Shown here piece after piece: positions 3,617 through 52,100 of a stretch of DNA of 63,283 nt. Numbering within the stretch: position 1 is the first letter of the stretch; the number at the start of each line of letters is the position of its first letter. Position numbers and translations under genes: made by a program. This DNA is from Chara braunii. Taxonomy: Eukaryota; Plantae; Charophyceae. The notes beneath the pieces were generated by a model that ran no database searches, was not told where the DNA came from, and saw nothing but the letters and a program-made list of their open reading frames with translations. The stretch spans positions 1,757,567-1,820,849 of the forward strand of contig BFEA01000029.1 of NCBI GenBank assembly GCA_003427395.1, given 5' to 3'.

Positions 3617-3620
<4 letters not shown>

Positions 3621-3657
<37 letters not shown>

Positions 3658-3770: not shown

Positions 3771-4441
3771 ATACAAACTGAATGAAACATACAAAAAAAA
3801 AAAAGCAAAAAAAACAAGGAAACAATGTGGAGGGTTCCTGCCAGCGTTGATTACCCTGGGATCCAGTGTATTAACTGAGCAGGAGATTAGAAAGAGGGGG
3901 GGAGAATCTCTTCACCCGAAAACAGGCGCCAGATACTAGCTGTTACACACTAATTCTTCCCTCCCCCAACATTGATTACCCTGGTAAACGAGTATTGAAC
4001 TGAGCAAAATATCAGAAATCAGAAAAGGCAACAATGGCGAGGGCGGACTCCGAGCGCTATTTTGGCGAAGCTAACGCTCCGCTCGAAGTGGCTGTCGTCA
4101 CCATGCTACGGCGGTGATTCGTCAACTCCCAGGTAACTGGGACGCCCCCCACCCGCCATAGTTAGGCTATGGTGGTTATGAGAGCTCCGCCGCTACCCCT
4201 TCCGGGGAAGCAACTGCTCACTGGTGGGCAGGGCAGTAGTCTCTCGCAGGGGGGCTCGGAGTTTCCGTGGCCTAGTCTGTTGAAACTGCCGCACATCCGC
4301 AAGAAGAAGAACTGTCAACCCTACGAAAAGTCTCGTGGGTAAGAAGCCTTTATACCTGGGCGGCATAATTACCCTGTACTTGTCCATAATTATTGAGGCC
4401 TTATATATATATATTGTCGCTGTTGTTTTGACACTGTATGT

Positions 4442-5881
4442 TTGATCTGGTCTGGACTCGATTCCGTCTCCTTTACGGCTGTCTCTCGTTCCGCTTTTAG
4501 GGAATCCGGAATGGAAACGAATCTTCCCAATTTGTACGCGGCGGACAGTACAGTCCCAGGTTCGGACACAAAACGAAACTACACGAATGAAGAGAAAGCG
4601 TATATTAGAGAACTGTTGGATGCTTGCTTTCACGAAGGACTTCTTCCATCGGGTCTGTGAATAGGCTCTACGGAACTGGGAGACAATTTTGCTAGACTGG
4701 ATCTCGATGAGGATTTCTCCGATGCCCAAACGGAATGGCTCAGAGAACACGCAGTTACCATTCAATTCCATCAGGAAGCGGGTAGTCTATCTAATGATAT
4801 CAAAAAGCAATTGGTGCGAGTGTGTGAAAACTCTTGGTACGATAGCGGGGATATCGACCTGGATACTAAACGGGGCCGTTATCAAAACGAAGGGAAAAAT
4901 CTTGCCTCATACGTGGCCGGCACCAAAGAAATCGCGGAATGGATGAGACAGGAGGGTGGAGTTTCAATCGAACTGAAAGGTAAAATGTATGAAGTGTCCT
5001 TCTTGTCGTGGATGGACCTAGCTGAGATGAAATTTTTCAAAACCACGGGGAAACCTAAGATTTTTTGGGTTTGCTGCCTAAACGTCCCAATGCAGTTGAT
5101 GGTGGCTCTTCACATTGCGGTTGAACGCAATTTTGGGAAGGTAATTAAACTTCACCCTTTTGAGGACTACACAGATGAGCCAGAACTAGGTAATGTCCGC
5201 TTTGATCTGGGTCCCCTGGCCGAGATGCGTGTCAGGAAGACAATAATCGTGGGAATCCCCAAAAAAGGGGAGTACCACGTAGAGGTCATATCGGCAGCCA
5301 CTCCCTGGTGCAACACGTGTCGTATGCACTACCACACGGAGATGGACACGTGCTGTTTGGCGAAGGAATCGGACCCCTTCGCTGACCCCTCTACGAAGGA
5401 GCCTCTCCCCCTCCCCCCCTTTTCTGGTTTTGTACCATGGGGCCAAACGGCTCCCACGTCCGGGTGGAACAGATACCAGAAACGAACAGGAGGGAAAGGA
5501 AGGGGAGCAGGGCAAAGTTCGACTGTGGGTAATTCAGGCCAAAAACAGAAGCCTGAGAAACCCACCTCACGGGATCAAAAGGGAGGGGGGAAGGGCAAGG
5601 GCCCCACCAGCAAATCAGAGATGAATTCATTGAGCAAGTCTGTCACAGAACAGAAAGTCAAACATACAGACTCTGTTCCTTCCTTATCGGAATCCTCCGA
5701 GAAATCGGAGAATTCTGATAGGGATATGAGAGATGCAGAGCACAGTCCGACGAACACAAAATCAACATTGATGCAGCAGATGCGGAAGCATCCAGAGCTT
5801 TGGAGGACTCGCGGAAAGGAAGCAAGGCCAAAGTCACGAAAGGCCCTAGCTCATCTCCACTCAAGAGGTCCCGATCCATGA
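4442..5881 (+). pseudogene. LINE-B ORF1 (gag-like, zinc knuckle), with an in-frame stop upstream of the 4811-5881 ORF
   Basis: PWCNTCRMHYH zinc-knuckle-like motif followed by a basic low-complexity tail; lies upstream of the endonuclease; homologous to 19690-20752. Confidence 0.75.
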
Positions 5882-6630
5882 TGAAACTCGGATCCCAAGA
5901 GCACAGTCGGAAGGGTTCCGGGGCGTCTAGTTCCAGCTCCAGTCTTGGCTCAAGCAGAGAATCGTCGGGGAATGACAGGGTTCACCGGAAAGGCTTAACC
6001 ACGTTGTCGGCAGCAGGCCCAGTACGTACGCTCTCAAAGGAGCAGATGGCTCTCCCTCGAATCCTGGTTCCGGTGATCTCAGTGGGAGGGGACAACCAGG
6101 TGGTTTTTTTTACCAGAACGAATGAGAACGGAGTAGTTTCCCTGCCAGCTACCCCCGTGGACACGAAAGACTGCCTAACTGAGTCGTTCATCTTACGAAA
6201 GGTAAGAACCTTGATCCACGATGGACTGTCGGTTAGGATGATTCCCGATCTGAGTGTTGGCATACACACGGTGGAAAGAAACAATGACCCGGTAGCTCGA
6301 CTATACCTGGCTTGTTTGGAGGGGAAAGTGGGTGATGCTCAGATCACGCATATGGAACAGGCAGGGTACACCTGGACTCCTCTCGTCCATCTTTCCTCCC
6401 CCGCTAATGAGAACCTGCACAGAATCAGCATTACTGATGGAATGCCTGCCACAGCAATCGCAGAATGGCTTGAAACTGCACCCCAAAAGGGAGTCCTCTT
6501 GGGGTCCTGCTTTTTGAGTTACCTGCGCCTCCCTTGGGAGCTTAATGCAAGTAAGAATAAAAGTAAGGGAAGCGCAGGGAGGGACCCCAAGATCAAGCCC
6601 TTAATGTCGTCCGCAAACCGAGTCCCCTAA
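5800..6630 (+). CDS. LINE-B extra ORF or frameshifted ORF1 C-terminal domain, function unknown
   Basis: 276-aa ORF between ORF1 and the endonuclease. A homologous remnant is at about 29640-29750 (KIFVPLILANCKG..MKLPTVDVD) and a positional equivalent is at 17207-17863. Confidence 0.6.
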   Translation: MEDSRKGSKAKVTKGPSSSPLKRSRSMMKLGSQEHSRKGSGASSSSSSLGSSRESSGNDRVHRKGLTTLSAAGPVRTLSKEQMALPRILVPVISVGGDNQVVFFTRTNENGVVSLPATPVDTKDCLTESFILRKVRTLIHDGLSVRMIPDLSVGIHTVERNNDPVARLYLACLEGKVGDAQITHMEQAGYTWTPLVHLSSPANENLHRISITDGMPATAIAEWLETAPQKGVLLGSCFLSYLRLPWELNASKNKSKGSAGRDPKIKPLMSSANRVP

Positions 6631-7068: not shown

Positions 7069-7834
7069 CTGGGTAGCACGGCGTACGTGTACGCGGGTTG
7101 CGCGTACACATGTACACATATTCCTGTACGCGACACGTACGCGCGTACACGTACTCCCGTACGTGGGAATACGTAAAAAAAAAAAAAAAAAAAACGTCAT
7201 CGAAAAAATCTGAAAAAACGTATGTTAGGAAAAATAATATTTCAAACAACTTTTGCCTGAGACTCATCTCGAGATTCTGTACCAAACTCGAGTTAAAAAT
7301 CAAAGACACAAAAACAAATAAATTTAAATAATTAAAAAAAAAACTAGGAAAAAAACATAAAAAAATAAAAACAAACTTCTATAACAAATATATGTTATGC
7401 AGAAACATGATACAAACAACTTTTGCCTGGGAGTCATCCCTGATTTCCCAACCAAACTGGAGTAAGAAATTAAAAACTAAAAAAAAGGTATTATTATCAT
7501 AATAATTAAAAAACTATTTAAAAATATATTTTTAATTTGTTAAGGTTTCTGATTTTTAAATCGAGCTTGGTCTGTAATTCGGGTATGACTCCCAGGCGAA
7601 TGTTGTTTGTATCATTATTCTGCACAACATACTTCTGTTTCAGATTTTTTGGAGTTTTTTTTTTTTTTTTTTTTACGTACGCGTACGCGTGATTTTGGGT
7701 TCGTACACGTACGCCGGAATACGTACGCGTACGCAGTGCGTATGTACGCCTGTCTCTTATACACATCTAGATGTGTATAAGAGACAGCGCGTACGCAGTG
7801 CGTACGTACGCACTGCGTACGGGGTGCTACCCAG
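7069..7834. mobile_element. hAT-type MITE inserted in the LINE-B endonuclease domain
   Basis: TIR CTGGGTAGCAC / GTGCTACCCAG; 8-bp TSD GAATACAG / GAAAACAG. Removing the element restores the DWNTVLN reading frame. CGTACG-rich subterminal repeats. Confidence 0.85.
7750..7787. other. Nextera mate-pair junction adapter (Tn5 mosaic ends), assembly artefact
   Basis: Exact CTGTCTCTTATACACATCT+AGATGTGTATAAGAGACAG, with a local duplication of the flanks. Confidence 0.97.
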
Positions 7835-19272: not shown

Positions 19273-21849
19273 GGTCCAGCGTCCCATTGAAACATCTTGT
19301 AATGGCGGGCTGAGACGGGCCAGGACCGGACGCCGCTTGAGGTCGAGTAACGCGCAACTCGCCGCAGCAGTCACGGCGTGGGGAAAAGGATCGTCAACTT
19401 CCATGTTGCTTTATGACGCCGTGCCACTTAACCGCTATAGCATAGCTATGGTGGTAGGGCTATGAAGGCCTCCTCTCACATAGAGGGGAAATGACTTCTC
19501 TTGAAGTCGCGCATGTCCCCTGACAGTGGCTCGCTATCCTAGCCTACCCACCACTCGAGAAGCAGTGAATACCAGCGACATGAGAAAACCTTGGAGACTC
19601 AACGCTCCCAGATAGGAGTTCAGCAACACGAGCAACGTTTTGGCCCCTAAGGTACAACTCTAGTGACACTTTATGAATTAAACTGATGCTCAAAGGAATA
19701 TGATATTGGCTTACTCCATGATATTGAGGCCTTTGATTATATATATTCTCTCTCTTTTACTTAGTTTGTCTTTCTTAGAGATTTTGTAGAAGTTGGTTGG
19801 GACTGAGCTGATGGAACACCCTATACATGAGGAAATGGTGGTGGAAGGGAAGGAGATTGAGGTACCGGGTCGGGTATATACAGATGAAGAAAAATAACAA
19901 ATCAATAGACTTCTTGTTGAATGCTCTACTGATGGAATTATCCCATTCGGGTTGAATATCGAAGTTCCTACACTCACAGACAACCTGACTCGCTTTGACT
20001 TGGGCGAGGAATTCTAGGAATACAACGTTCAGTTCCTTAACGATGCCGCAGTTATCTCCAATAAGGTCAAAAAGCAGTTGGCGAGAATCTATGAAAACGC
20101 TTGGTATGATTCCGATCTGATTGACGGAGGTGTTAAACGTGGTCGATACCAAAGCGAAGGAGAAAACTTGTGCTCCTTCGTTTCATCTCAAACAAACGTC
20201 ATCGCACGGATGATTCACAAAGGGACTGATCTAATTTATGCAGAAGGGAACAAATATAAAGTACAGTTTATGCCATGGATGACGCTTGCTGAGATGAAAA
20301 TCTTCAAGGACTCCGCACAAAAAATATTTTGGATCAGATGCCCACGTATACCTCTCTAGCCAATGTCCATGTTATTAACCGTTGTGGAAAAAACATTTGG
20401 GACAGTTATTCCACAACACCCCATGAAATCTGATGATGAAGAACCTGAGTTGGGTACACTGAGGTTTGACTTGGAGCTTCGAGCGAGTGTCAGGGTAAAT
20501 CCACATATCTGGTAGGAATCTCGAACCAAGGGGATTATTACTTTTAAGTTATTCTGCGAGCACCCCTCGGTGTGGCCTCTGTCGTGCCTTTTACCAATAC
20601 GAAACACATGAGTGTTGCCTGGTACAGGTTAAGGCAAAGCATGACCCATTCGATGAGGAATTGGGAAAAAATCCCCCCCATGAACCACCCTTCTAAGGAT
20701 TCGTTCCGTTAGGAGAATGTCCTCTATTGACTGGATTTTGTAGGTTCTTCCCGCTGTCGAGCGCTTCGGCCCGGCACCTCACGCGGTGGCGCGGGACCCT
20801 CTCGGCCGCGTCACGCAGGAATTGGATCAACCTCGACATAACACGCGAATGGAGCTCCCTTAGGCCGCTCCGGCCGAGTGCGCCAGCCATACTTCTCGCG
20901 AGCCCCTACGACAGGGTAGGGCCTACGCGAGGCACGACTTACCTCCACCTTACGGGAGTTGTCACCTCCCATCGGTGGGTGTATCCTCGCCGAGCTACCA
21001 GTCCACAATACGAAAGTTAATCAGTTGCAATCGCAGAGGTGGACCAGCCGAGGGCGTTTCTCGTTCGCTGTAGCATAGGGGGTACGCGCGGTAATACGCC
21101 TATCGGACCCGCACGTGAACCGACATCTTGGGGGGCTAAAGTCCCAGGCGCGGCCCGTCGTCGGTCGACTAGGACGTATCCCACGCACCACGCTGCGAAC
21201 ACAAAAGCAAAACACACGCGCACACGCACACGCACATACAACGCGCCACAATACAAGTAACGCGGGCACTACGCGAACAACGCGACAACGCTCCTAGCCC
21301 CTCAGTAGTCGTCCCATAACTACCCAATACAGGAATCGAGTGGGCGTCGTGCGCGAGACTTAGTATAAAATCGCGCGGACGCAGGGCTTACTCATATCGA
21401 CTCGCAATGCAAGCGTACGCAAGCAGTCGCAATGATGGCGTACCAGGTAGTACCCATACTCGCACGGTCCTCGTTAATCTCGAGGGTCGCGTTCGACACT
21501 CAAGTGTCGGCTGACACGCACCTAGAGGATTGATCTCTCGACGCTGAACAATCGTCATGTGCGGTTGGAGACCACACACCCTCTTCTGCACCCTTATGCA
21601 AAGCGGGTGGTACACAGGCCCATGCATGTGGTGGTAGTCGTCTCTCGCGGCCCTAGGGGTGAGTCCTCCCCGGGGCCTGGGCGAAAGTCAAGGGGTTTGA
21701 CTTTGACGGCTGCCACGAACTACAACGTCCAACCATAAAAATCTCTAAGAAGCAACGAGACTCGCACGAACCCAAGGAGAGGGGATAGGGCAAGGGTCTC
21801 CTGGCCTTCTGAAACAAAACTTATGGCCTTGGGACGCACTCCCCTCCTA

Positions 21850-21887
21850 CTGTCTCTTATACACATCTAGATGTGTATAAGAGACAG
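21850..21887. other. Nextera mate-pair junction adapter, assembly artefact
   Basis: Exact 38-bp junction sequence; the flanks at about 21764-21849 and 21889-21974 are duplicated. Confidence 0.97.
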
Positions 21888-23209
21888 GGCACGAACCCAA
21901 GGAGAGGGGATAGGGCAAGGGTCTCCTGGCCTTCTGAAACAAAACTTATGGCCTTGGGACGCACTCCCCTCCTATGGGCGGTGCCGGCGGCCCACGATAA
22001 TCCCAAGCGTTGCGCCTGCGCGCAAGCCCGGCAGCCCCATAACTTTGGACGCCGGGGGCAGCGAGGCGTCGCGTGCAGGGCTTTGATATAAAATTGCGCA
22101 GCCGCAGGCCAACCTTATGTCAACCACTGCTGCCGATCATATATGGTAACTGCGGCTCCGACCTCGTGATATTGAATGGCTGAAGGAACTCTTCGCGGGG
22201 GGGGGGTACTCCTCACGATACTGAACGGCTGAAGGATTCGCCGTTCGGTCCTTGCGATATTTCCGCCTTTCAGGTGGAGTGTCCCGCCGGCCAAAGTAAA
22301 TAGGCTTTATGCAAGGGGGAGGCCCTCCCCTTCAGGGCCTAGGGCTTGGGATGTCCTGGACAAGGACCTCGAATCCCAGCCCAGGACTTACGTCCGACTA
22401 GAAAGTCCCAAGACGCAAGTAAGCAGAAGGGAGGGTCTTCCCTATCTATCAATCTCAACTTCCACGCGGTTATTAACACGGCCCTTTTGGGGGCCCTCGA
22501 ATACCCACCGTACGTATACCCACACGTACATGCAAAAAGGGACAAAGTTGTGACGATCACTCCTCACAGGCCCAGTGGGACGCCTCACGACCATGTATAC
22601 GTATATGGAATCGCAGACAGTCCAAATCCAAAATCCAAGCCACAGGACATACCTGCAACCACACCAAGGATCAATCAATGAAACAAGCACTACACGGAGT
22701 CAACCCCAACCATTCTCTATGCTCATACCCCTTCGCTTTAGCCATGCAGGCCCCAATTGCCGATCCAACCAACCTCAATTAAATACTCTGTACCTTTGTC
22801 AAATGACCATTCAATAAAAGTCCCGGTGAAACTCTTACTAAACAGTAAAACCACTAGGGCTAAAGCCTTTTAGGTTGAGTATGGAGAGTGAGTTGGAATT
22901 GAGTCGAAGACCGACGAATCGGCAACCGACCTGTTATCCATGATAACAGAAGACGATCCTCGTAGGATCAAGCCGGAACTAGTCCAAATCCGAAATCAAT
23001 TCGATCAAGATGGTCTGTAACACAAGACAGGTCAACCCCAGGCTAAACCTATAAGTCCATGGAGAGTGATCCCAATATCACGATCCCACTCAAATCACCT
23101 TAATTAACTAAGCCTGAATCTACCTATAAGATGCGCCCAAAGCAAGGGTAGACCCCGACATAATCTCCCCTTTCCAGGGTGGATTGTCAAAATCGCCACC
23201 TGTCAAAAT

Positions 23210-23900
23210 ATAATCTAACTCCTCTAAATCAAGAAAATTTCGGCAACGTTTCCCGTAGGAAAAGTGTCTTTCCAAAGTTTATATCAGCTCAAACATGGAA
23301 AACAGAAATAGTCTTCGACTGTCCAAAGTCCAATTTCGTCTAACTTCCCGAATTAGCAAAAAATTGGGCAGCATTCCCTTTAGAAGGGGAGACTTCTCAG
23401 ATTTATACTATGTCCGATGTGAACTCAAAAGACAACTTGAGTTCAACTTAGACAAGATCTAGCCAACTTCTTAGTTTTGCAGAAATTTTGGCAGCACTCG
23501 CTTTAGAAAACTGCTATTCCAAAATTTATACGAGGCTAAGCTCAAAATCTGGAAATAACTTTGACTTCTCAAAGTCCAATTTTGTCTAACTCCTTGAATT
23601 AGCAAACATTTGGGCAGCATTCCCTTTAGAAAATGAGACTTTCCAAATTTTCACTAAGCCAGATATAAAGAATAGACAAATTGAACTTTGACAAGTCACA
23701 AGTTAACTAACTCCTTGGATTTGTAGAAATTTCGGCAGCGCTTCCCGTAGAGAAAGTGGCTTGCCAAGATTTATACAAAGCCAGGTATAACAAAAGATCC
23801 CAGAAAATGCGAGAATTGATCTTGCCAAGATTTATACAAAGCCAGGTATAACAAAAGATCCCAGAAAATGCGATAATTGATCTAAGTAAAAAAAGACAGC
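23210..23900. repeat. Diverged tandem repeat (~123 bp, 5 copies) followed by a ~61-bp duplication
   Basis: AACT(C/T)C...GAAA(A)TTT(C/G)GGCA(A/G)C...TAGAA recurs near 23218, 23342, 23465, 23588 and 23709. 23761-23820 is repeated at 23822-23881. Confidence 0.75.
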
Positions 23901-24129
23901 TCAGAAAATGCAGGAATTGACCTAGCTGCTATCGCTCTAGCACGTGGCGAGCCTCTAAAACAACTACCTGTCAACCTGAAACTCAGACCAAGTAGTAACC
24001 TCACTTAGCCACATGCAGGCCAAACCACAAAGGTAAGTACTCTCACCAACCCCAAGCCCCTTTAACAAACAATATTTCATGCTTCCTCTGTGAATTATCC
24101 CGTCATACCCAAGCTTACATAAGGCATAA

Positions 24130-24307
24130 GCCAGGGCGCCTGAACTTACAGAGCGCACCCAACTCAGCCAGACCCACGGTTAAAATACCTAAACTTATAG
24201 AGCGTTCTGACTTGGCCGAGTATACACAAACAGAGGGCACAACCACTTTTCTCTTCTTTGGGCGTCTGACCAGACCACTCTAGTCGCCCTGAACTGTTTA
24301 AATAGCC

Positions 24308-24357
<50 letters not shown>

Positions 24358-25095
24358 CTTAGTCTTCAAAGGGACATAAGGCTGAGCCGCTCAACTTAGA
24401 ACATTGCTTAGCCTTCCCACAGTTACCCTCAATTATATCTCTTAATTATACTCTCTTATGTTGTGATAAGCTATAATCAGGCTACCTAAACTTATAGAGC
24501 GGTCTGACTAGCCTGTTCTTAATAACATAGCAATATAGTATAGCCAAGTTATACCCATAAGGTTCAACATGTGCGAGGCGTTGGGTCAGACCACCTAAAC
24601 TTATAGAGCGGTCTGATCCTCTGCCAGGTTCGTTTCTTTCTGATCCAATCCTTGCGAGGCAGTGGGGCAGGCTACCTAAACTTGTAGAGCGGTCCGTCCC
24701 TTGCCAAGATTATTCCCTCAAAACAAAACAGAAGAAGGGCTGAGCTACCTAAACTTATAGAGCGGCTCAGACCTCCTTGTTCAGAACCAAAGAAACTGAG
24801 AGAATCCAAAGTAAATGAGGCAACCCAAGGCACCTAAACTTCTACAGCGCCTTGGGTCCCTGAAAACCACTCACAGTCAAATCCCCACAAGTCAGAGTAG
24901 TCAGGATACCTAAACTTATAGAGCGTCCTGACCCTCCATGCAGTTCACAACACCAGGTCTCCCCAAACTTATGGGGACATCCCGACCTCCAGAGCTTCAG
25001 GCTACCTAAACTTATAGAGCGGCCTGAGGCTCCATGCAAACCAAAAATAAACAGAGCGTCGGGCTTCCCCAAACTTAAGGGGACCTCCCAGCCTT
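24130..25095 (+). repeat. Array of about 12 hairpins with conserved core ACCTA-AACTTA-TAGAGC and variable covarying stems
   Basis: Examples: GGGTCAGACC-core-GGTCTGATCC, CTGAGCT-core-GGCTCAG, CCCAAGGC-core-GCCTTGGG, GTCAGGAT-core-GTCCTGAC, TTCAGGCT-core-GGCCTGAG. Confidence 0.85.
24312..24354. repeat. (TA)n microsatellite
   Basis: Direct reading of the sequence. Confidence 0.95.
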
Positions 25096-26961
25096 AATGA
25101 CCCAGTCAAGCTGCACATAATACTGCCTTCCTCCCAACCTTCCCCCAGATGCAACCCATCTCATTCATAGTCTGTTTTCAGGCAATCAACAAACCTGAAA
25201 CTGAGATTGCACACACACTCCTTTACTTCAGTCTGACTTAAGTCCTGACGGTCAAACCAAAATTAGAGTACAGGAGTCACGCAGTACACTCAGTCAAACC
25301 ATAGAAAGATGTACAGGTAGGGGTTATAGTTGGGTTTATAGAGGGAGTCAAGGGATTACCACTCAGTTCCCTGCCTCCAGGACTCTGCTTGAGTCCCGGC
25401 AGAGCTCCCGCAATCGGTGGGGCAACCTCCCACAAAGGCCTTGGCGCGGATTACGGGCTACATGCTCGCCTGCCGCCTTCCTCCCAGAACCAAGGACCAG
25501 ACTTTAGAGTAAGAAGGGCAGGATAAGAGGGGTAAGACTCTCAGACTCAGGGAAGAACCACTCAGACTCGCTTGAGAGGGTCTTCAATCCTTCCGCGCCT
25601 GAGGGCCCCGCAATGGCAGCCTAGTGACAACCGCTTGATCCAACACCAGTCACGATACTGACGTCAACCTTCCCCTTCTAATCATGCCCAAGTACAATCA
25701 CTGCCTTGTGTAAAAACCGTACCCCGGCCTCGCTCACAACCCCCAAGCTGCCCCGAGCCTTACCCCCTTTCTTGCTGCCTCACACACTGCGGTCACTAGA
25801 ACAGGCAGCCCACCAGTCGACCAAGCAAGCCTCCAACCCCACAACTAGCTTCACGTTACTCCCATTGGCAGGTTGCGCAAGCCGAAATGAATACTTAGCC
25901 AGACCGCAGAAAGACACTCCTTAGTAATCCAACCTCCCTCTCGATACAGTTGTGCCGTGCCTTCACAAGCTAGAGTGAACCTTCCGCTACCCCACGGAGG
26001 AATGCACCGTTCTGCAGTCGTGCGCACAGAAATGGCAGGAAGGCGCCGGTTCCGTCAATAGGATGGGAAGCACATCGGCCTAGTGGTGAGTCTCCAACCT
26101 CGCGGCTCACTCCTCCCCGCCACTGTCTTCGTTCGGAGGGGCGTCACACTGGCCGAAAGGTAAGCCGCTCACCCCTCAATTCGCTCCTGGTTACTTGTTC
26201 AACAGAATGAGGAAAATTACGTGAATCTTCCGCTAGAACACGGAGAGATACAGATTCGACGATTTCCTTCCTTCAGGCGCAGCTCTTAACACCCATACTG
26301 CCTAATCTAAGCCCCAACCCACGAATCCTATTCCCTCATTAGTCTCCCTCGCCCTCAAAGCCTTTAGAATGCCCTTCCCCTTTTCCGATTTCATCAAAGA
26401 TCGGGTGAGTATCGTGTTGCATGCTTCCCCCCATCCCCGTTTCTCAACACCTCCGCGCAGCCTATAAGTTACACTGCGCAAAAAACTACTACTCTGCTGC
26501 TAATTCGGGCCACCCCAATGGATTCGCCCTGACCCAAACATCAGATTAGCTTTTGCCCCTCCGCCCGAGTTCACAGAGAATCGAGTAGTAATCTCGATTT
26601 CTCCTCCCTTCTTCCTTAGCTTCCACCATAGCCTGGCGCACCATCTTTCTCTATTGACTCCATATCCGCTAACCTACCGCCCGAACTACCCTCACTAGTA
26701 AACTCGCCATGGCCGAACTGCTAGGAACGAGCCCTTATTCGCCCATTTCCGTCGAGGAACGGGCGTAAAACCGTCTTCCCTCCGGCCATAGCTCGCCGCT
26801 CCTTCTTCGCTGCGCCCCTTCCTATCTCGCACGCACCCCACGCTAGATCGCGTCCCGGTTCACCTCCTTCACAATGGTGCCCGCCACTCCGTTCTTCGTT
26901 TTTCAACCGGCCCCGCTGCCCGTCGGTCCGTCCAGAAGCACGTAACAAGAGGTGAGCGAGC

Positions 26962-27074
26962 AAAAAATCCCGAGCACTCGGGTCTCCGCTTGACTTATGC
27001 GTGTCAGCTTCGCGTCGAGGCCACGCTGAACTTCTCTGTATCGTTCCAATTTCGACAGATGTCCCAAAGGACAC
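26962..27074 (-). ncRNA. U6 snRNA-like unit A (best preserved; intact ACAGAGA, ends in T6)
   Basis: Minus strand reads GTGTCCTTTGGGACATCTGTCGAAATTGGAACGATACAGAGAAGTTCAGCGTGGCCTCGACGCGAAGCTGACACGCATAAGTC...TTTTTT, collinear with U6. Confidence 0.88.
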
Positions 27075-27164
27075 GGGCCGGGGCAGCACCTTCCTCAGCA
27101 CTCCTAACCCTACACGGCTGAGACCCCGCCCCTTTTTAACACAGGAACCCACCCTCCTTCTTGG

Positions 27165-27248
27165 GGATCGTGCACTTCGACTTTACCCTGGGCCAAGCTG
27201 ACCTTCTCCGTATCGGCCCGAATCCCCCACAGGTGCCCCAATACGATC
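27165..27248 (-). ncRNA. U6-like unit B (ACGGAGA)
   Basis: CGATACGGAGAAGGTCAGCTTGGCCCAGGGTAAAG. Confidence 0.65.
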
Positions 27249-27312
27249 CTTCGTGGCCATACCCCCACCCACTTCGCTATTCTTGCACGGACCTGGCCCT
27301 TCCTTCGGGCTT

Positions 27313-27365
27313 CATGCATGCGAACCTTGCACAGGGCCGTGCAAGTCTTCCCCGTCTCCTCTTTG
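27313..27365 (-). ncRNA. U6-like unit C, partial (ACGGGGA)
   Basis: GAGACGGGGAAGACTTGCACGGCCCTGTGCAAGGTTCGCATGCAT. Confidence 0.6.
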
Positions 27366-27410
27366 CGGGCCCCCCTGGCCACGTCTCGCGCTCGTGTTCA
27401 TCCCCGGGCT

Positions 27411-27491
27411 TCGCAAGCACTCCCTTTGCACGGCTGGCCAAGCAGATCCTCCTTGTATCGTACCGATTTCAACAGATATTCCGAAGGACCC
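27411..27491 (-). ncRNA. U6-like unit D (ACAAGGA)
   Basis: GGGTCCTTCGGAATATCTGTTGAAATCGGTACGATACAAGGAGGATCTGCTTGGCCAGCCGTGCAAAGG. Confidence 0.75.
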
Positions 27492-27559
27492 CACTTACAA
27501 TGGCCCTCCACGCCCCTTTCCCTTAACCTGTTTTTCGTCCGGGTTCATTCCCGGACTTT

Positions 27560-27640
27560 CCCCCGTTACCCTACATAGCAGCCAGACAGTTATTCCCGAT
27601 ATCACTTCAATCTCCACGGATGACTTCCGGATTTCCGCAC
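27560..27640 (-). ncRNA. U6-like unit G, highly diverged (ATCGGGA)
   Basis: ATCCGTGGAGATTGAAGTGATATCGGGAATAACTGTCTGGCTGCTATGTAGGG aligns without gaps to the U6 core. Confidence 0.45.
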
Positions 27641-27690
27641 GGCCACAGCCCCATTCTACCCCGACGCACGCACCTGACCCCTCCGTTGGG

Positions 27691-27773
27691 GTCCATACGC
27701 GTCAAACTTGCGCCGGGGCCAAGCGAACCTCCTGTGCACCGTTCCAATTTTTAACAGATGTCCCGAAGGACTC
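27691..27773 (-). ncRNA. U6-like unit E
   Basis: GAGTCCTTCGGGACATCTGTTAAAAATTGGAACGGTGCACAGGAGGTTCGCTTGGCCCCGGCGCAAGTTTGACGCGTATGG. Confidence 0.8.
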
Positions 27774-27825
27774 GCGCGGCTGCAGCCTCGCCCTGCTTTG
27801 GCATGCGAACCCGGGCCCTTTTTTG

Positions 27826-27909
27826 GGATCTATACGTATCGTCCTTACGCAGGGGCCATGCTACTCTTCCCCATATCATTTTGAATCTAGCGAGTATCCC
27901 GTAGGACTC
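27826..27909 (-). ncRNA. U6-like unit F (ATGGGGA; near-canonical internal stem-loop)
   Basis: GAGTCCTACGGGATAC...GATATGGGGAAGAGTAGCATGGCCCCTGCGTAAGGACGATACGTATAGATC. Confidence 0.8.
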
Positions 27910-29057
27910 GCGCTGCGCGACACTCGTCTGAGCGGCTAGCGGTCTCATGGCCCCCTGTCCTTAGTCCGTTTTCTCGTCCGGGTTCGTTCCCGGCCCCCCC
28001 CCCTTCCGCGGTTGCTGCGTCAGCAAGTCCGACCAGCCAAGAGAAAAAAAATCTAAGAACAAAGATCTCCCGTGGGCTCTTTCAAAATTCTCTCGTTCCA
28101 CCACCCTGTTGCTCCCCCAGAACTTATTCACCCCTCCCTTCTACCCCTAACCCTAGGATCGTAAACAGGGGATGAGGTAAAACAAGGTGGACTTAGACAT
28201 TAGCCCCCGGGGCTGCTTAGCGAAGGGGGTCGCCAAATGGCTACAGGCCGCGGGCATCCCCAAGGCCCCCCTTGCCCCGCGGCCGGGCCCGTGACCGAAC
28301 TGCCTCAGCAAAACAAAAGGGGGATAGTCCTACGGGACCCTCGACCCCTCGGCTTCTCCGCTCCATAGCTCCCGTGCCTCCGTCTGCCGGTCTCGAACCT
28401 CGTACCTCTGCCAAAACAATCCAGTGTCGTAACCGATAGGGTTAAGCCCAAGCCTGTGACCAGCAGGCGCGGCTTCCCACATAAGGCGGTCTCACTCGGC
28501 GTCTCCGGGCCAGGGTACCGCCTCGGCCACTCCTTTGGCCCCCACCTACATTCGCGGTCCCTTGGCGTCTGCGCCACCCTGCCAGCCTGGGCCTGGGCCA
28601 TCCCATGCACCTACTGGCGTGTCAACCCTACCGCTGGACCACGCGCTCCGATCAAAAACAGACTTTTACCCCCAATCCAAGCTCGCAACATGGTCTGGGC
28701 CGGTCGGCTAGACCGACCGCCTATCTCAACCAGAAAAAATCACACGCGTGCCTCAAAATTTGCGCGCCCACATACTCCATACCGGGACAAGGCAGACCTT
28801 GGCCCGCACGCGGACGATCCTCACATTTTTCCCGTACGAGCACCCAAAAGCCAGGCTAACCGAGCCTTTCTGTCACTTGCAAAAAACAGGGCGGATACCC
28901 TTGTAAGGGTATTCGCGCCGACAGCGCAGGAGACAAGCGGAACATTTCTGCAAGCACCCCTTGGTGTAGCCTCTGTCGTGCCTTTTACCATGACGAAACA
29001 GATGAGTGCTGCCTGGTAAAGGCTGAGGTAGAGCATGATCCATTCAATGAGGAATTG

Positions 29058-29111
<54 letters not shown>

Positions 29112-30360
29112 AACAACCCTTCTCAAGATTCGCTCCGTTAGAAGAATGTCCTTCATTGATTGCATTTTGTAGGTTCTTCCCTCCAGGAGATAAGTGAAAC
29201 AAAAATCGAAACTGGAATCAAAAGAGCGGAAGAGAAAATGAAAGAATGATGAACTAATCAAACAGTCACAAATTATGAAGCAGCGGAGGAAAAGGAAATA
29301 AAACCGGAAGGTATCAACCAGGACCATGGGGAAGATCGAAAATGAGGAAGAAGAGGATCTGGAAGAAGAGGAGGAATAGGAAAATATAGAATCTACTCCG
29401 GATCTGGCTGAAAAGGCAGCAAGAGTATTGGCGAGAGAGAAAAAGAATGGAAAGGGAAAAAACGATCACAAAAATGGGTACCAAAGAGTAAAGGGGGCAG
29501 ACACAGGTCGGAGGGCGAAGGGATGGAAAGTGGGAAGAGTACAGGAATAGGAAAGATGGAAGGAGCCCATGGCTTGATAAAAGCGGGTCCCGTAATGACC
29601 TTGGCAAGTTGGCCGTTCTAGAATACCAAAATATTTCAAAATTTTTTGTCCCCCTAATTCTTGCCAATTGCAAAGGAGTAACGGTGATGTCTAACCTACT
29701 TGCGGATGGGACGATGAAACTTCCTACAGTAGACGTCGACGCAACCTTAATGATTGAATATAAGATAATTGCTTAAAACATAGGATTCATGAAACCCCCC
29801 CCAAAAAAAATGTTGGGTTTGAACTAAATTTATTTAGGATTTTGAGAGTACAATTTTTAGGTCTTCTACAGGAGCAAGATTCTTTGCAAAGTAAAAAAAA
29901 ATAAAAATAAAAAAAATAGAAAAATATTTTTGAGACCCACTGAAAGTGGCGAGGAAAAAAAAATAAAAATTCACAGTAAATAATTACTAGCCGGAGCATC
30001 GTATATTTATTAATTAAAATATCCATGTTTTCTTTGAATCTTAAAAGATCATGTATATAGTCCTATAAGTTGTGTATTACGATGAACATGTTCGAGGGTT
30101 TGGCGAACATGCGAACATGTTATCTTGTTTACTTATAGTACTTAATACGTTCCCATAACATATTCTCCCATCTGTGGGTAAACTTTCTTTTTTTTAAATG
30201 TTATTTTTATTTTTTTTCTTTTGTTTTTTTTTATTTTTAACTTGCGTTTGACTAAGAATTTGAAGATGTCCCCAAGATAAAAGTTGTTTGGGTTATCATT
30301 TTACATAACATATTTTTTTGACAAAGATTTTACTGTTAACTTCAAAATTGCTTTGTAGAG

Positions 30361-40926: not shown

Positions 40927-43703
40927 TCACAATACAAATCTGTTCAAGTAAAAAGTGTCGTCACGTTGTCTTCCATATGTTGATGAACCCCACATCAGTT
41001 TTGCGAAATATGGAACAATGTGTACAGTGTTCGTGATGCTGTCAACGGAGATGACGCTGCACAGTTGGCGACCATTTATCACTTCCCATTTCAATTTTTT
41101 GCACCCTGTCACATCTGCTCTTTCAGTGTCTGCCTCTTTGTACCATTTCACAAAGGCGCACTCGTGCGTGGTGGGCACTCCTTCCGTACAGGTGTTCATG
41201 GCAAAAAACATTGCCACAGATGCATACCACATACTTCCTGTCTGTGCCCTCACAGACACATCACTGTGCACCGCTTTCCCGTGGAAGTTGGGTGAAGCCC
41301 TCGCAGTTTGCACAAGTGCGCCCCTGGTTGTTCTTTCGCCTGTTGCTACGATGGCCAGATGCGTTCTAGTGCGTATTAACATGTCCTCTGGCGGTGGATT
41401 GCACCCGTTTTCCGACATGTATGTGTGAAGAGCTTCTGGAAATAACTCCTTACACGGGAGGGCATCCAATATTGCTTTGGTGGTTCCCGTCGCACCTTCG
41501 TTCCCATTTATTCCTTCATTTTCTTGGGGGAAATATCAGAGTTGCATCTTTGCCGTGTCGTGTGCGGCAAGTGTGTTCATTCCACGTGCCGAGCACTCCA
41601 TGACCGACGACCAATTTTCAGTTGTCCTCTTCCTGTGTTTCCGTGCACGGTCAATGTCGTCGTCGAATGCGACTGTCCTTCGCACGTGATTTACCATTTG
41701 AAACGAGGCTTTGCGTTTGTTCGACGACAGGAAAGGCTGTTTGCAAAACTTCTGGTGGTGGTGCTCCTAGACATCGGCCGCGAAGCTATCAGGGAGACCT
41801 GAACGTTCGATGCACGCCCTCAAATGCANAAGGTCATGTAACTTCGNCACTTTCCNGTTNGAGGTTTNATAACGACCCAGGACNTGTTTGAGGGTTGTTA
41901 TGAAGTCCGTCATCAGATTGTCACATGCGTCAAGCGAATGACTTGAATGCTTTGTGCACCGGAACATTGAGATGTACAGTTCTATTAGTTTCTTGAAACA
42001 AGATGTTATTCGTTTCCCTACTGAACCGGGGACTATGTTGGACACTATGAATACGCACACTGTCATGACCGACTGGTTCTGCTTAGCTTCGAAACGGCCC
42101 TCTCGTGAAAAGTAGTCGCAACCTGTTGCAACAGGTAGCACAAGTTGCGGATACGTAGTACTCCTTCTCTTGCTCAATGTTTGCAACCTCGCATCCAACT
42201 CCTTCAACACATGGCTTTGTGGGACGTGGCTTAACTTGTCAAAGGGAGCTGCTTTGAAAGCGTCTAACATGTGCAAAAAAATGTCATGCTCGATGGTGTG
42301 CATGCGGTCCGGTTGCAGAGCCAGGTGGTAGTCGAACATCAGATCATCGTCTTCAAGACCTCTATGAAACCCCCACAGGCCGTTCTCTTTCAAATGTGTG
42401 TGCATGTTCAAGTTCGACAATTGTGTCTTCGCCAAGCGACGAACATCATCGTTGTCTGTCGTGTGGAATTCTATTAGAAGTGCACGTTCCCTGCTTTGTG
42501 ATCGACGATAGTTATTGAAGTCCGCAATGACATCAAAATGTGATTTTGACACTGTGCATGTCGCGTAAACACCGTATCGAACCGTTGCGATGGCGCACCT
42601 CTCAGGGTAATCTTTAATATAATTCAGTAGGAAAGGGTGCACTGTTACTTCTCCCCAGCGCTCATCGTCATAAACAATGCCATCATGCGACGCGTGCTTC
42701 GCAGCCTGCAACACCGCAGACAGAGCTGAGTGCAATATGACGGCTTTGCGTTGCCTGAACGCGGTGCTTTGCAAACCCCATCCCTTGTCTCTTGGGCGGT
42801 GATGGAGGACAGGAAGATACGCGAGAAGTGTCGCGTAATGTGCATGGTCACCTATTGACATCATTAATGGATATGTTGTCTGTTTTTGCCGTCCATCTAC
42901 ATGTGTCTTGTCAGAATACATACAGATTGGCACTGCATACCGTGTTCTGCCATTCTTATTTACGCCTTTGTGCGCTCTGATGATGGTCTGCACGTGATGC
43001 TCCAACACAGCGAGCGCTGTCTATTGTGGGTTCTGGCTGGGGGGGAGGGGGCCGAGAGACACGACACCGTTTCCATATTCCTCGTCGCTGCTTTGAGCAG
43101 TGACGTGAAAGTCGTGCGCCAATCTCGGTACCATAGCACGGCATGTGCATCCGGTGGCCAGTCATCACTTCTGAGATCTATCTCCCGCCACCCGTTCGTC
43201 TCTGCCTGCCTGCTCGTCCAACGTAAAAACTCACAGCTGTTGCGATACACGATTTCCTACGGCGAAAAACTTGGATCTCTCAGTACTAAGAGAAGAGCGT
43301 CGATGTCGTTAAGTGACATCCCTAAGCTACTCCTAGAGGACAATATGATCGCAGCCAGTCTGCGGGATGTGTCAAACGCCCGCACGTCGGGGGGATCTTC
43401 CTCGGAACCACATTCCATTTCGGCTTCCACAGCGAGGTCGACGATGTTCTCTCCCAGACCATTGCCATCCGGCGCGCCGTCCTCCCCCTCGGATCTGTTG
43501 TCCCGACTCTGTCCGTCGTCATCGTTTGATCTACGACTCGTTGGCACCAGACATGCCCTCGCGCGATAAGAGTTTAATGTCCTTAATGAACTGAAAGGTC
43601 GACCGCATTCACACACCATGTGGTCGTCCGTCATCTGCTCTGTCGACTCTATAGGATATGAAATGCCCTCACACCTACAATGCCAAATGCTTTGCACACA
43701 CAA
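40927..43703 (-). pseudogene. Plavaka-type (CACTA/CMC-related) transposase with N-terminal zinc finger and C-terminal BAH-like part, frameshifted
   Basis: CECGRPFSSLRTLNSY zinc finger; LWYRD; MYSDKT..YPLMMSIG..LLAYLP; HPFLLNYIKDYPERCAIA; PDRMHTIEH; KLHDLxH; CAFVKWY..SVDSITNTVHIVPYF..FYLNRF. Confidence 0.82.
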
Positions 43704-44559: not shown

Positions 44560-47252
44560 CAATACACTTCAGGATTTACTTAGTCATTTTTTTTTATTTG
44601 GCATATTATATCTCGACGTGTATTCGGTGTTTCGTTACCTAAATACACTTCGGGATTTTCGGGATTTCACTTAGGGATTTTTTTCAATGTGGCATATTAT
44701 ATCCCAACGTGTATTCGGTGTTTCGTTACCGAAATACACTTCGGGATTTTCAGGATTTCACTTCGTTATTTTTTTCAATCTTGCATATTATATCCCGACG
44801 TGTATTCGATGTTTCGTAACCGAAATACACTTCGGGATTTTTGGGACTTTACTTAGTCATTTTTTTCAATCTGGCATATTATATCTCGACGTGTATTCGG
44901 GGTTTCGTTACTGAAATACACTTCGGGATTTTCGGGATTTTACTTAGTCATTTTTTTTTATCTCGCACATTATATCCCGACGTGTATTCAGTGTTTCGTT
45001 ACCGAAATACACTTCGGCATTTTGGGGATTTTAATTAGTCATTTTTTTCGATCTGGCATATTATATCCCAACGTGTATTCGGTGTTTCGTTACCGAAATA
45101 CACTTCGGGATTTTCAGGATTTTACTTAGTTGTTTTTTTCAATCTGGCATATTGTATCCCGACGTGTATTCGATGTTTCGTTACCGAAATTCACTTCGGG
45201 ATTTTTGGGATTTTACTTAGTTATTTTTTTCGATCTGGCATATTGTATCCCGATGTGTATTCGGTGTTTCGTTACCGAAATACACTTCGGGATTTTCGGG
45301 ACTTTACTTAGTCATTTTTTTCGATCTGGCATATTGTATCCCGACATGTATTCGGTGTTTCGTTACCGAAATACACTTCGGGATTTTCGTAATCTTACTT
45401 AGTCATTTTTTTCGATCTGGCATATTGTATCCCGACGTGTATTCGGTGTTTCGTTACCGAAATACACGTCGGGATTTTCGGGATTTTACTTAGTCATTTT
45501 TTTCGATCTGGCATATTGTATCCCGACGTGTATTCGATGTTCCGTAACCGAAATACACTTTGGCATTTCCGGGATTTTACTTAGTCATTTCTTTCGATCT
45601 GGCATATTATACCCGATGTGTATTCGGTGTTTCGTTACCGAAATACACTTAGGGATTTTCGGGATTTTACTACGTCATTTTTTTAGATATGACATATTGT
45701 ATCCCGACGTATATTCGGTGTTTCGTTACCGAAATACACTTCGGGATTCTCGGGATTTTACTTAGTTATTTTTTTCAATCTGGCATATTGTATCCCGACG
45801 TATATTCGGTGTTTCGTTACCGAAATACACTTCGGGATTTTCGGGATTTTACTACGTCATTTTTTTTTATCTGGCATATTATATCCCGACGTGTATTCGG
45901 TGTTTCGTTACCGAAATACACTCTGGGATTTTCGGGATTTTACTTAGTCATTTTTTTTAATCTTACATATTATATCCCGATGTGTATTCAGTGTTTCGTT
46001 ACCGAAGTACACTTTGGGAGTTTTGGGATTTTACTTAGTTATTTTTCTCGATCTTGCATATTGTATCCCGACGTGTATTCGGTGTTTCGTTACCAAAATA
46101 CACTTCGGGATTTTTCGGATTTTACTTGATTATTTTTCTCAATCTGGCATATTGTATCCCGACGTGTGTTCGGTGTTTCGTTACCGAACTACACTTCGGG
46201 ATTTTCGAGATTTTACTTAGTCATTTTTTTCGATCTGACATATTGTATCCCGACCTGTATTCGTTGTTTCATTACCGAAATACACCTCGGGATTCTCGGG
46301 ATTTTACTTAGTTTTGTTTCTACGTTATATCCCAAAGTATTTTCAGTGTTTCGTTACCGAAATACACTTCGGGATTTTTGGGATTTTACTTGGTCATTTT
46401 TTTCGATCTGCCATATTGTATCCCAACGTGTATTCAGTGTTTCGTTACCAAAATACACCTCGGGATTTTTAGGATTTTACTTAGTCATTTTTTTCAATTT
46501 GGCATATTGTATCCCGACGTGTATTCGGTGTTTCGTTACCGAAATACACTTCGAGATTTTCGGGATTTTACTTAGTCATTTTTTTTCTGTCTGGCATATT
46601 ATATCCCGACGTGTATTCGGTGTTTCGTTACCGAAATGCACTTCGGGATTTTCGGGATTTTACTTAGTCATTTTTCTTGATCTGGCATATTGTATCCCGA
46701 CGTGTATTCGGTGTTTCGTTACCGAAATACACTTTGGGATTTTTTGGATTTTACGTAGTCATTTTTTTCAATCTGGCATATTGTATCTCGATGTGTATTC
46801 GGTGTTTCGTTACCGAAATACACTTCGGGATTTTTAGGATTTTACTTAGTCATTTTTTTCGATCTGGCATATTGTATCCCGACGTGTATTCGGTGTTTCG
46901 TTACCGAAATACACTTCGAAAATTTCGGGATTTTACTTAGTCATTTTTTTCGATCTGACATTTTACTTAGTCATTTNNNNNNNNNNNNNNNNNNNNNNNN
47001 NNNNNNNNNNNTTTTTTCGATCTGACATTTTACTTAGTCATTTTTTTCGATCTGGCGTATTGTATCCCAACGTGTATTCGGTGTTTCGTTACCGAAATAC
47101 ACTTCGGGATTTTTGGGATTACACTTGGTCATTTTTTTCGATCCGGCATATTATATCGCGACGTGTATTCGGTGTTTCGTTACCGAAATACACTTCGGGA
47201 TCTTCGAGATTTTACTTAGTCATTTTTCTTGATCTGGTATATTGTATCCCGA

Positions 47253-47253
<1 letters not shown>
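44560..47253 (+). repeat. Satellite array 1, 91-bp palindromic monomer, about 29 copies
   Basis: Unit TTTTACTTAGTCATTTTTTTCGATCTGGCATATTGTATCCCGACGTGTATTCGGTGTTTCGTTACCGAAATACACTTCGGGATTTTCGGGA; unit starts at 45211, 45302 and 45393. Confidence 0.95.
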
Positions 47254-47320
<67 letters not shown>

Positions 47321-49124: not shown

Positions 49125-52100
49125 TGCACTTCCGGTTTCACTTAGTCGTTTTTTTGGCGGGGGGGGATTATATCCCGGCGTGCGTTCGGGATTTCGTTAC
49201 CGAAACGCACTTCGGGATTCCGGGATTTTACTTAGTTTTTTTTTTGGCGGAGGGGGATTATATCCCGACGTGCGTTCAAGATTTCGGTACCGTAAACACA
49301 CTTCGGGATTTCGGAATTTTACTTAGTCGTTTCTTTTGGGGGGGGGGATTATATCCCGACGTGCGTTCGGGATTTCGGTACCGAAAACGCACTTCAGGAT
49401 TTCGGGATCTTACTTTTTTTTTTTTTGGCGGGGGGGATTATATCCCGACGTGTGTTCGGGATTTCGGTACCGAAAACGCACTTCAGGATTTCGGGATTTT
49501 ACTTAGTCGTTTTTTTGGGTGGGGATGATTATATCTCAACATGCGTTCGGGATTTCGGTACCGAAAACGCACTTAGAGATTTCGGGATTTTACTTGGTTG
49601 TTTTTTTTGGGGGGGGGTGATTATATCCCGACGTGCGTTCGGGATTTCGGTACGGAAAACAAACTTCGGGATTTCGGGATTTTACTTAGTCGTTTTTTTT
49701 CGCTGGGGTGATTATATCCCGACGTGCGTTCCTGATTTCGGTACCGAAAATGCACTTCGCGCTTTCGGGATTTTACTTAATCGTTTTTTTTGGGGGGGGG
49801 GGTTATTTCCCGACGTGCGTTCGGGATTTCGGTACCGAAAACGTACTTCCGGATTTCGGGATTTTACTTAGTTGTTTTTTTGGCGGGGGGGATTATATCC
49901 CGGCGTGCGTTTGGGATTTCGGTACCGAAACGCACTTCGGGATTTCGGGATTTTACTAAGGCGTTTTTTTTTGGTGGGGGTATTATATCCCGACGTGCGT
50001 TCGGGATTTTGGTACCAAAAACGCACTTCGGGATTTCAGGATGTTATTTAGCTTTTTTTTTGGCGGGGAGGGATTATATCCCGACGTGTGTTCGAGATTT
50101 CGGTGCCGAAAACGCACTTCGGGATTTCGGGATTTATCTTATTTTGTTTTTTGGCGGGGAGGGATTATATCCCGACGTGCGTTCGGGATTTCGGTACCGA
50201 AACGGACTTCAGGATTTCAGGATTTTACTAGGGCATTTTTTTTAGGGGGGGGATTATATCCCGACGTGCGTTCGGGATTTTGGTACCGAAAACGCACTTC
50301 GGGATTTTGGGATTTTACTCAGTTGTTTTTTTGGCGGGGGGGGGTTATATCCTGACGTGCGTTCGGGATCTCGGTACAAAAAACGCAGTTCGGGATTTCG
50401 GGATCTTACTTAGTTTTTTTTTTGGTGGGCCGGGGATTATATCATGACGTGCGTTCGGGATTTCGGTACCGAAAACGCACTTCGGGATTTCGAGATTTTA
50501 CTTAGTTGTTTTTTTTTGGGGGGGACGGATTATATCCCGACGTGCGTTCGGGATTTCGGTACCGAAACGCACTTCGGGATTTCGGGATCTTACTTAGTCG
50601 TTTTTTTGGGAGGGAGAGATTACATCCCGACGTGGGTTCGGGATTTCGGTACCGAAAAGGCACTTCGGGATTTCGGGATTTCACTTAGTTTTTTTTTTGG
50701 CGGCGCGGGATTATATCCCGACGTGCGTTTCGGATTTCGGTACCAAAACGCACTTCGGGATCTTGGGATTTTACTAAGGCATTTTTTTTGGAGGGAGGAT
50801 TATATCCCGATGTGCGTTCCGCATTTTGGTACCGAAAATGCACTTCGGGATTTCGGGATCTTACATAGTTTTTTTTTTGGCGGGGGGGGGATTATATCCC
50901 GACGTGCGTTCGGGATTTCGGTACCGAAAACCCACTTCGGGATTTCGGGATTTTACTTAGTTGTTTTTTTTTTAAGGGGGAGGGTTATATCCCGACGTGC
51001 GTTCGGGATTTCGGTACTGAAAATGCACTTCGGGATTTCGGGATTTTACTTAGTCGTTTTTTTGTGGGGGATGATTATATCCCGACGTGCGTTCGCGATT
51101 TCGGTACCAAAAACACACTTCGGGATTTCGGAATTTTACTTAGTTTTTTTTTGGCGGGGGGGGATTATATCCCGACGTGCGTTCGGGATTTTGGTTCCGA
51201 AAACGCACTTCGGGATTTCGGGATTTTACTTAGTTNTTTTTTTGGCGGGGGGGATTATATCCCGACGTGCGTTCAAGATTTCGGTACCGAAATGCACTTC
51301 GGGATTTCAGGATTTTACTTAGGCTTTTTTTTTCGGGGGGGGATTATATCCCGACGTGAGTTCACGATTTTGGTACCGAAAATGCACTTCGGGATTTCGG
51401 GATTTTACTTAGTCGTTTTTTTGGGGGGGGGTGAGTATATCCCGAGCTGCGTTCGCGATTTCGGTACCAAAAACGCACTTCGGGATTTCAGAATTTTACT
51501 TAGATTTTTTTTTCGCGGGGGGGGATTATATCTCGACATGCGTTCGGGATTTCGGTTCCGAAAATGCTCTTCGGGATTTCTAGATTTTACTTGGTTGTTT
51601 TTTTGGCGGGGGGGATTATATCCCGACGTGCGTTCAAGATTTCGGTACCGAAACGCACTGCGGGATTTCAGGATTTTACTTAGGCGTTTTTTTTGGGGGG
51701 GGGATTATATCCCGACGTGAGTTCACGATTTTGGTACCGAAAACGCACTTCGGGATTTCGGGATTTTACTTAGCCGTTTTTTTGGGAGGGGGTGATTATA
51801 TCGTGACGTGTGTTCGAGATTTCGGTACCTAAAACGCACTTCGAGATTTTGGGATTTCACTTTTTTTTTTTTTTTTGTCGGGGGGGGATTATATCCCGAC
51901 GTGCGTTCGGGATTTCGGTACTGAAAACGCACTTCGNGATTTCGGGATTTTACTTAGTTGTTTTTTTTTGGAGGGTGGGGCTGATATCTCGACGTGCGTT
52001 CGGGATTTCGGTACCGAAAACGCACTTCGGGATTTCGGGATTTTACTTGGTCGTTTTTTTTTGGGGGGGCTGATTATATCCCGACGTGCGTTCGGGATTT

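Follow-up and report, generated by a model that had tools for sequence, protein, structure and literature searches.

The Chara braunii genome carries seven U6-derived units head to tail within an LTR-like mobile element, and the explanation that we favour, with a probability of about 0.74, is that U6 was captured into the LTR, multiplied by tandem duplication and has since been decaying as passive cargo. The window, the whole stretch of DNA analysed here, comprises 63,283 nt of contig BFEA01000029.1, and the array lies on its minus strand at 26962–27907 (Table 1). The LINE reverse transcriptase encoded in the window has its nearest relatives among Chara braunii proteins. Read in this way, the array shows giant Chara LTRs collecting and amplifying scraps of RNA, and it is a caution for the annotation of U6 in Chara, which dead copies overwhelm.

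Table 1 Coordinates of the U6-derived array, its host element and the flanking host sequence (positions in the window)
Feature	Position	Strand	Remarks
Host sequence, first copy of older ~225-bp tandem duplication	20552..20752	+	LINE-ORF1-like zinc-knuckle as judged by eye; not part of the element
Left copy of probable 4-nt target duplication, CCGC	20751..20754	+	Clean empty-site rebuild
Solo-LTR-like element, 8.17 kb, without conserved ORF	20755..28923	-	Starts TGTCGGCGC, ends GCGCTCGACA
Diverged ~121-bp repeats	23207..23926	-	Five or six repeats; near-perfect 61-nt tandem pair at 23760-23883
Nine hairpins	24140..25040	-	Constant 18-nt core, changing yet paired stems; internal positive control for selection; related copy L001
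Highly conserved block, probable R region	25336..25491	-	Strongest RNA signal of relatives
U6 unit u7	26962..27072	-	82% to Chara U6; box and AGC intact; upper ISL altered; U6's own 3' U-tail (T6) kept; Rfam 50.1 bits (26972-27072)
U6 unit u6	27150..27241	-	58%; box ACGGAGA
U6 unit u5	27290..27377	-	68%; most of 5' part gone; box ACGGGGA here, ACAGGGA in sisters
U6 unit u4	27394..27489	-	70%; box ACAAGGA here, ACAGGGA in sisters
U6 unit u3	27541..27630	-	57%, most decayed; marginal alone; sisters nearer U6, differences at 27573-27592
U6 unit u2	27677..27771	-	81%; 5' hairpin whole; triad CGC; ISL broken; Rfam 26.1 bits
U6 unit u1	27807..27907	-	73%; box ATGGGGA; AGC retained; bulged U gone; Rfam 46.1 bits
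Copy of u3 tail (27513-27564, 75%)	27952..28003	-	Probably left over from an eighth unit or a block duplication
Terminal 57 nt common to very abundant LTR superfamily	28867..28923	-	Summed contig depth ~252,000 versus 60-180 over array (run X3); also in L008
Right copy of probable 4-nt target duplication, GCGC	28924..28927	+	One mismatch versus CCGC; empty-site rebuild
Host sequence, second copy of older ~225-bp duplication	28946..29181	+	Outside the element

The units are 57–82% identical to Chara U6. An earlier inspection of the letters without database searches (the sequence-only reading) had described seven collinear U6-like units on the minus strand, and Rfam together with a leave-one-out HMM, in which each unit was sought with a model built from the remaining units, confirmed them, u3 only marginally: six units (u1, u2 and u4–u7) were significant and were recovered at E≤1.2e-6, whereas u3 reached only E=0.61. 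A plant-type U6 pattern had no match in viral contigs and one in a bacterial MAG, a eukaryotic contaminant that was taken as the outside reference, and u3 aligned with this outside U6 at z=2.2 and with u1, u4 and u7 at z=4–6. The Rfam gathering score for U6 was passed by two units, and the Rfam and tRNA scan of the whole window yielded nothing besides U6 above threshold. Over the first 78 positions, identity to a dispersed Chara U6 copy was 0.73, 0.81, 0.57, 0.70, 0.68, 0.58 and 0.82 from u1 to u7, and the units differed from one another by 26–58%. The seven variant box sequences listed earlier are correct as read in the window, and the diversity claimed for them is present there, but the variants of u4 and u5 were created by private changes (27453 T>C and 27353 C>T, respectively). 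A 5' GTCC-NNNN-GGAC hairpin, said to be kept in several units, is intact solely in u1, u2 and u7, and GTCC-TTCG-GGAC is simply Chara U6's own 5' end; the loops TTAG and TTTG also occur among dead dispersed Chara U6 copies. A hammerhead reading of GTCC...GGAC-GAAA was rejected, the CTGANGA core being absent by eye and Rfam giving no match. As a separate observation, positions 1–2578 of locus L005 (NZ_JABSOU010000224.1), a eukaryotic contig of 2.6 kb in a Cognatishimia MAG, hold a very compact group of U6, U5, SRP RNA, two 5S rRNAs and ~11 tRNAs.

That the array sits within an inserted mobile element, as had been proposed, is borne out by shared ends, varied flanks and the rebuilding of the empty site. 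The minus strand of the element begins at 28923, its other end lies at 20755, and these TG...CA ends, which carry a short inverted repeat, recur in other Chara loci, for which a comparison set of twelve was drawn from GCA_003427395.1. For example, an LTR-like sequence in locus L008 opens with the same terminal 57 nt (95%), and locus L014 contains the 20755-end sequence twice, with different flanks. DNA contigs have many different flanks past 28923–28927, beside the very deep block 28867–28923. Deleting 20755–28923 plus one CCGC/GCGC copy restores continuous host sequence: of the 18 nt to the right of the element, 14 agree with the sequence that follows on from the second ~200-bp repeat, a score attained at only 2 of 60,938 window positions. 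Because the empty site rebuilds across the ~200-bp direct repeats, these are an older host tandem duplication outside the element, and they were rejected as its LTRs. Another placing of the right end, at 19514 with a duplication of 5 nt, was also rejected, since L014 ends twice at the 20755 sequence. The element 20755–28923 is solo-LTR-like, the labels LTR, U3 and solo being taken from end structure, and neither of the two matching ends in L014 is followed by a PBS, nor did a full copy with two LTRs, PBS and PPT come to light in the loci compared. The insertion point lies at the end of the older ~225-bp tandem duplication (about 87% alike; 20500–20754 and 28928–29200, plus strand) in LINE-ORF1-like sequence, and Pfam gave no match for the zinc-knuckle reading of this duplication.

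The array occurs in more than one copy. Contig depth is only a rough guide to copy number, with diverged single loci at 8–12 and contigs 95–99% like the window at 43–59 in run X3, and corresponding values of 7–10 and 18–27 in run X1, which suggests roughly three to five near-identical sisters bearing the array. Single-copy status had been named earlier as a sign of neutrally decayed tandem pseudogenes; the array is multi-copy, the extra copies being explained by the LTR's own transposition, and the view that it is no ordinary single processed U6 pseudogene is supported. A decayed tandem U6 gene cluster specific to this locus, or an assembly artefact, with no link to a mobile element, would fit the presence of a mate-pair adapter inside the element (21850–21887) and the lack of a contig spanning the whole stretch. 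However, the window-like contigs are collinear, of even depth several times that of a single copy and 2–4% different, and cover most of 25599–28695; the units are too divergent to resemble an assembly duplication, and both element ends recur elsewhere, all of which makes such an origin scarcely credible. The adapter, a Nextera mate-pair junction sequence, is found in the scaffold at 21850–21887 and 7750–7787 and also in locus L007 at ~9904, and marks the window as a draft assembly; the instance at 21850 is flanked by a 100% identical 86-nt duplication, an assembly artefact.

A more distant copy (run X3 record 13) reaches from u4 as far as the beginning of u7; over these 484 nt it shows 73 differences and 21 gaps. 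The element ends and the hairpin array are common to far more copies (depth 8,000–250,000) than the U6 array, and the LTR in L008 has collinear anchors flanking the array position on both sides and no U6 match. This relative without U6, taken with the few array-bearing copies, indicates that the array is specific to a sub-family. A spurious ORF across the array (27253–27936), used as bait for further copies, had no match in protein searches.

The units have drifted without regard to U6 structure. Expected changes were derived from the base-specific rates of the rest of the unit, with a dispersed Chara U6 copy as reference, and over the seven units, a number that limits the power of the test, observed and expected changes were 20 and 23.4 in the 5' hairpin, 14 and 14.7 in ACAGAGA, 7 and 7.6 in ACA, 5 and 5.9 in AGC, and 37 and 36.9 in the ISL. 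Columns showed no heterogeneity across units (P=0.22), and the outside U6 as reference agrees (ACAGAGA 14 against 15.0; P=0.18). With either reference the substitutions are random relative to U6 structure, which speaks against functional U6 variation. The most frequent change in the array is A>G (44 of 160; 9 of the 14 in the box), and AT>GC changes number 80 versus 45 for GC>AT; the array strand is 37% G, as in the rest of this LTR part and in the equivalent part of L008. The ACAGAGA box is intact in u7 alone, the AGC triad is found in u1, u6 and u7 only (u1 lacking the bulged U, u6 and u7 having broken ISL pairs), and the U4-pairing region is 25–35% changed, at random. Folding of the whole array showed no excess over shuffles (z=-0.86), and a tail hairpin visible in u2, u3 and u5 was not significant, the best of 22 offsets reaching -2.0 versus -7.9 for the nine-hairpin array. 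The window copy has about 2.5% private changes relative to its sisters. In the distant copy the array part has diverged by 15%, in addition to the 21 gaps, as compared with 9–12% for the non-U6 LTR parts of distant contigs, which possibly stem from different loci. Two findings count against passive cargo: the order of the array (u4–u7) is kept in the distant copy over at least 15% element divergence, and the pentamer TGGCC is over-retained, with 2 changes versus 8.8 expected, although this was a post-hoc pick and the units are non-independent.

Transcription was likewise considered. It had been proposed that the array might form a single Pol III polycistron, whose cleavage could release U6 variants able to direct the spliceosome to non-canonical 5' splice sites, a scheme with which the T8 (28051–28044) before and the T6 (26967–26962) after a T4-free 1.08-kb stretch of the minus strand, the roughly U6-like length of the units and the retention of box, AGC and U-tail in u7 are compatible. 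The T4-free run exists as described but is expected by chance, 1,076 nt of this kind arising in 47% of shuffles (P=0.47), and the T6 at the end of the run corresponds in the alignment to the U-tail of U6 itself, 3' oligo-U being present in u7 only. Functional U6 genes of the land-plant type have an upstream USE and TATA; no match to either was found near the array with motifs of that type, from which the Chara consensus may differ. Two runs of oligo-dT (poly(A)) RNA (0.9 and 1.6 Gb) contained no array read at ≥99% identity and had zero depth across 27208–27675, reads at the 5' end of u7 leave it for unrelated sequence, which is what U6 copies elsewhere within mRNAs would produce, and none of the array's sequence words is present in 17 RNA-like contig sets. 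The array is apparently silent, as judged within the poly(A) libraries. The ACA of ACAGAGA reads intron positions +4 to +6, but the commonest box change falls in the GAGA half and not in the ACA half; box changes occur at the background rate, and two of the variants are private to the window copy. The reading as alternative 5' splice-site guides is not supported. Box, triad and ISL occur together in none of the seven units, and as the U6 box and triad are essential for catalysis (PMC5855946), this argues against functional U6 guides and leaves a polycistron of variant U6 RNAs highly improbable.

In a complete element the array would belong to the 3' untranslated end of the genomic RNA made by Pol II and would not form a separate RNA. 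RNA reads from relatives pile up at 25336–25491, and their first mates map to the plus strand (36.8 versus 1.0, and 68.8 versus 0.35). A first mate on the plus strand denotes minus-strand RNA in the usual stranded libraries. This block is probably R, and the array would fall within U3, sense to the element RNA. Such 3'-end U6-like units might act in cis by binding U6 partners and altering how the retrotransposon RNA is retained in the nucleus, exported, stabilised or silenced, with Prp24/SART3, Lsm2-8, a METTL16-type methylase and U4 as candidates for which loose similarity would be enough. All units are sense to the strand transcribed in relatives, the array persists in the sisters and the distant copy, TGGCC is over-retained and arrayed RNA motifs are used elsewhere in the same LTR, as a cis-acting role would lead one to expect. 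We nevertheless consider it unlikely, given that the ACAGAGA context and the U-tail each survive in one of seven units, that the U4-pairing region has changed at random, that the array is conserved no better than its flanks and is absent from a related LTR, and that the background density of U6 makes repeated capture likely. The earlier idea of decoys for U6-binding proteins or U4 is compatible with the data but gains no positive support. Slightly less probable again is that the lineage turned captured U6 into a repeated cis module, in which imperfect U6 mimics change the host's nuclear handling or silencing of element RNA. If the array did act on element RNA, this would be a new way for a transposon to mimic spliceosomal RNA.

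Capture followed by passive decay begins from a genome rich in dead dispersed U6 copies, with 13 matches in twelve unrelated loci that total 409 kb (351 kb excluding N), or ~1 per 30 kb, a density from loci that were picked via LINE genes and are possibly biased. At this density an 8-kb LTR has a fair chance of receiving a copy, so that capture is unsurprising. Contigs matching the first 41 nt of u7 are of very high depth and have varied A-rich upstream flanks. One or a few copies would have reached the probable U3 of a single LTR lineage, in sense orientation; the route may have been a LINE-type insertion into an active element, or a switch of template to co-packaged U6 while the element was being reverse transcribed. 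Retroviruses package U6, at about one copy per MLV or RSV particle, and template switching can patch 7SL and other host RNAs into their genomes (PMC4997597); this is shown for retroviruses and only inferred for the Chara element. A handful of human snRNA pseudogenes are linked to LTR elements (Giles 2004, as cited in PMC4476161).

Unit and block duplications would then have built an array of seven to eight units, probably through template slippage or unequal recombination between two RNA copies, with only the last unit keeping the U-tail. The spacers had been described as unrelated; this does not hold, since the 3' tails are alike among u1, u2, u5 and u6 and among u3, u4 and 27952–28003 (p about 0.002), and these common non-U6 tails point to unit and block duplication. 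Furthermore, a ~440-nt block aligns with the next block with a score of 105 versus 32±7, partly from U6 itself. The same passive end state could have been reached by serial independent U6 retrocopies inserted one behind another, before or after LTR entry and with little duplication, since A-rich tails are favoured targets for more insertions of LINE type. The tree of the units has a star-like shape, with no single clade (p-AU 0.4) and no supported branch, and dispersed copies that are adjacent, internally repeated or inverted occur in L011, L009 and L010, both in keeping with serial insertion; however, the common tails and the block alignment, the single strand of all units and the lack of remaining A-tails or target duplications between them make it unlikely as the main route. 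No A-tails or target duplications were visible per unit or around the array, and divergence of 18–43% would erase the per-unit signs. Branch lengths are 0.19–0.89 for array units versus 0–0.12 for dispersed Chara copies. Drift with the A>G/T>C bias has carried the units toward the G-rich LTR strand, and the copy inserted here was reduced to a solo LTR, probably by recombination, and has since acquired its private changes.

The dispersed pairs lie at 10934–11124 in L011 (adjacent, with an A-rich run between the copies at 10934 and 11024), 2509–2626 in L009 (internally repeated) and 3614–3764 in L010 (inverted). Several dispersed copies have 4–7 extra bases after the ACAGAGA box. In the window itself, a decayed dispersed U6 at 208–330 on the minus strand, shortly after the poly(A) of a LINE, is split by a CAC plus A27 insertion with an apparent ~12-nt target duplication.

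Other parts of the LTR are also repetitive. The nine-hairpin array (24140–25040; loop NAAGUU) is present in very many copies and in L001, and selection is far more evident in it than in the U6 array; a search of metagenomes with the hairpin-core pattern returned one related piece (L001), which is free of U6. A 32-nt piece of an abundant hairpin-like Chara repeat lies at 26221–26252 and, more weakly, at 25975–26006. The loci compared contain this repeat at least 10 times, it is fused to the 5' end of a U6 in some contigs, and weak miRNA-family matches suggest that it may be a MITE. In L014, the same LTR superfamily is represented at 2903–6046 by its right-hand end (81% across 1 kb), and a second, inverted end fragment lies at 4532–4691 with a Gypsy pol remnant nearby.

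Sequences of small-RNA genes are known from LTRs. The TRIMp3 elements Cassandra (5S rRNA), Helenus (tRNA) and Ajax (5S) hold such a sequence inside the LTR, where the RNA itself is non-functional (PMC10886601), and the Chara element resembles them in this respect; however, TRIMp3 elements are short, with one unit and conserved internal Pol III promoter boxes, whereas the Chara element has seven units in an 8.17-kb LTR and no conserved sub-part. No internal promoter has been reported for snRNA genes (PMC4494074). SINEU of crocodilians, U1/U2-headed SINEs with a LINE-derived tail (PMC4494074), likewise amplify snRNA-derived sequence inside a retroelement, but there the snRNA part forms the 5' head, while the Chara array begins ~1 kb inside an element with TG...CA ends. 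The earlier suggestion of a U6-derived SINE head is not supported, the array being internal and having no A-tail or target duplication around it. U6 processed pseudogenes and U6/LINE chimeras (PMC4476161) are similarly RNA-derived, promoter-less and decaying and are the likely source of the Chara units, although processed U6 pseudogenes, which make up groups II–IV of that paper, are single and dispersed with A-tails or target duplications, in contrast to units arranged head to tail and spread by LTR transposition. We found no report of a tandem U6 array in an LTR in the open-access literature, and with the 5S and tRNA precedents known, it is apparently an unreported but minor variant. In plant Ty3/Gypsy elements such as Ogre/Tat, tandem repeats arise in variable non-coding regions. 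Like those arrays, the Chara array is a sub-family-specific, fast-changing non-coding part, though its monomer is recognisably U6.

Elsewhere in the window, the minus strand carries an ORF at 60065–61471, whose histone H3-type fold (Pfam Histone, E=1e-15) follows a long N-terminal part, and a Plavaka transposase remnant at 41767–43008 (Pfam E=9e-22). The segments 44568–47254 and 49136–56080 are long arrays of a 91-bp satellite, and the palindromic monomers of the two arrays are related.
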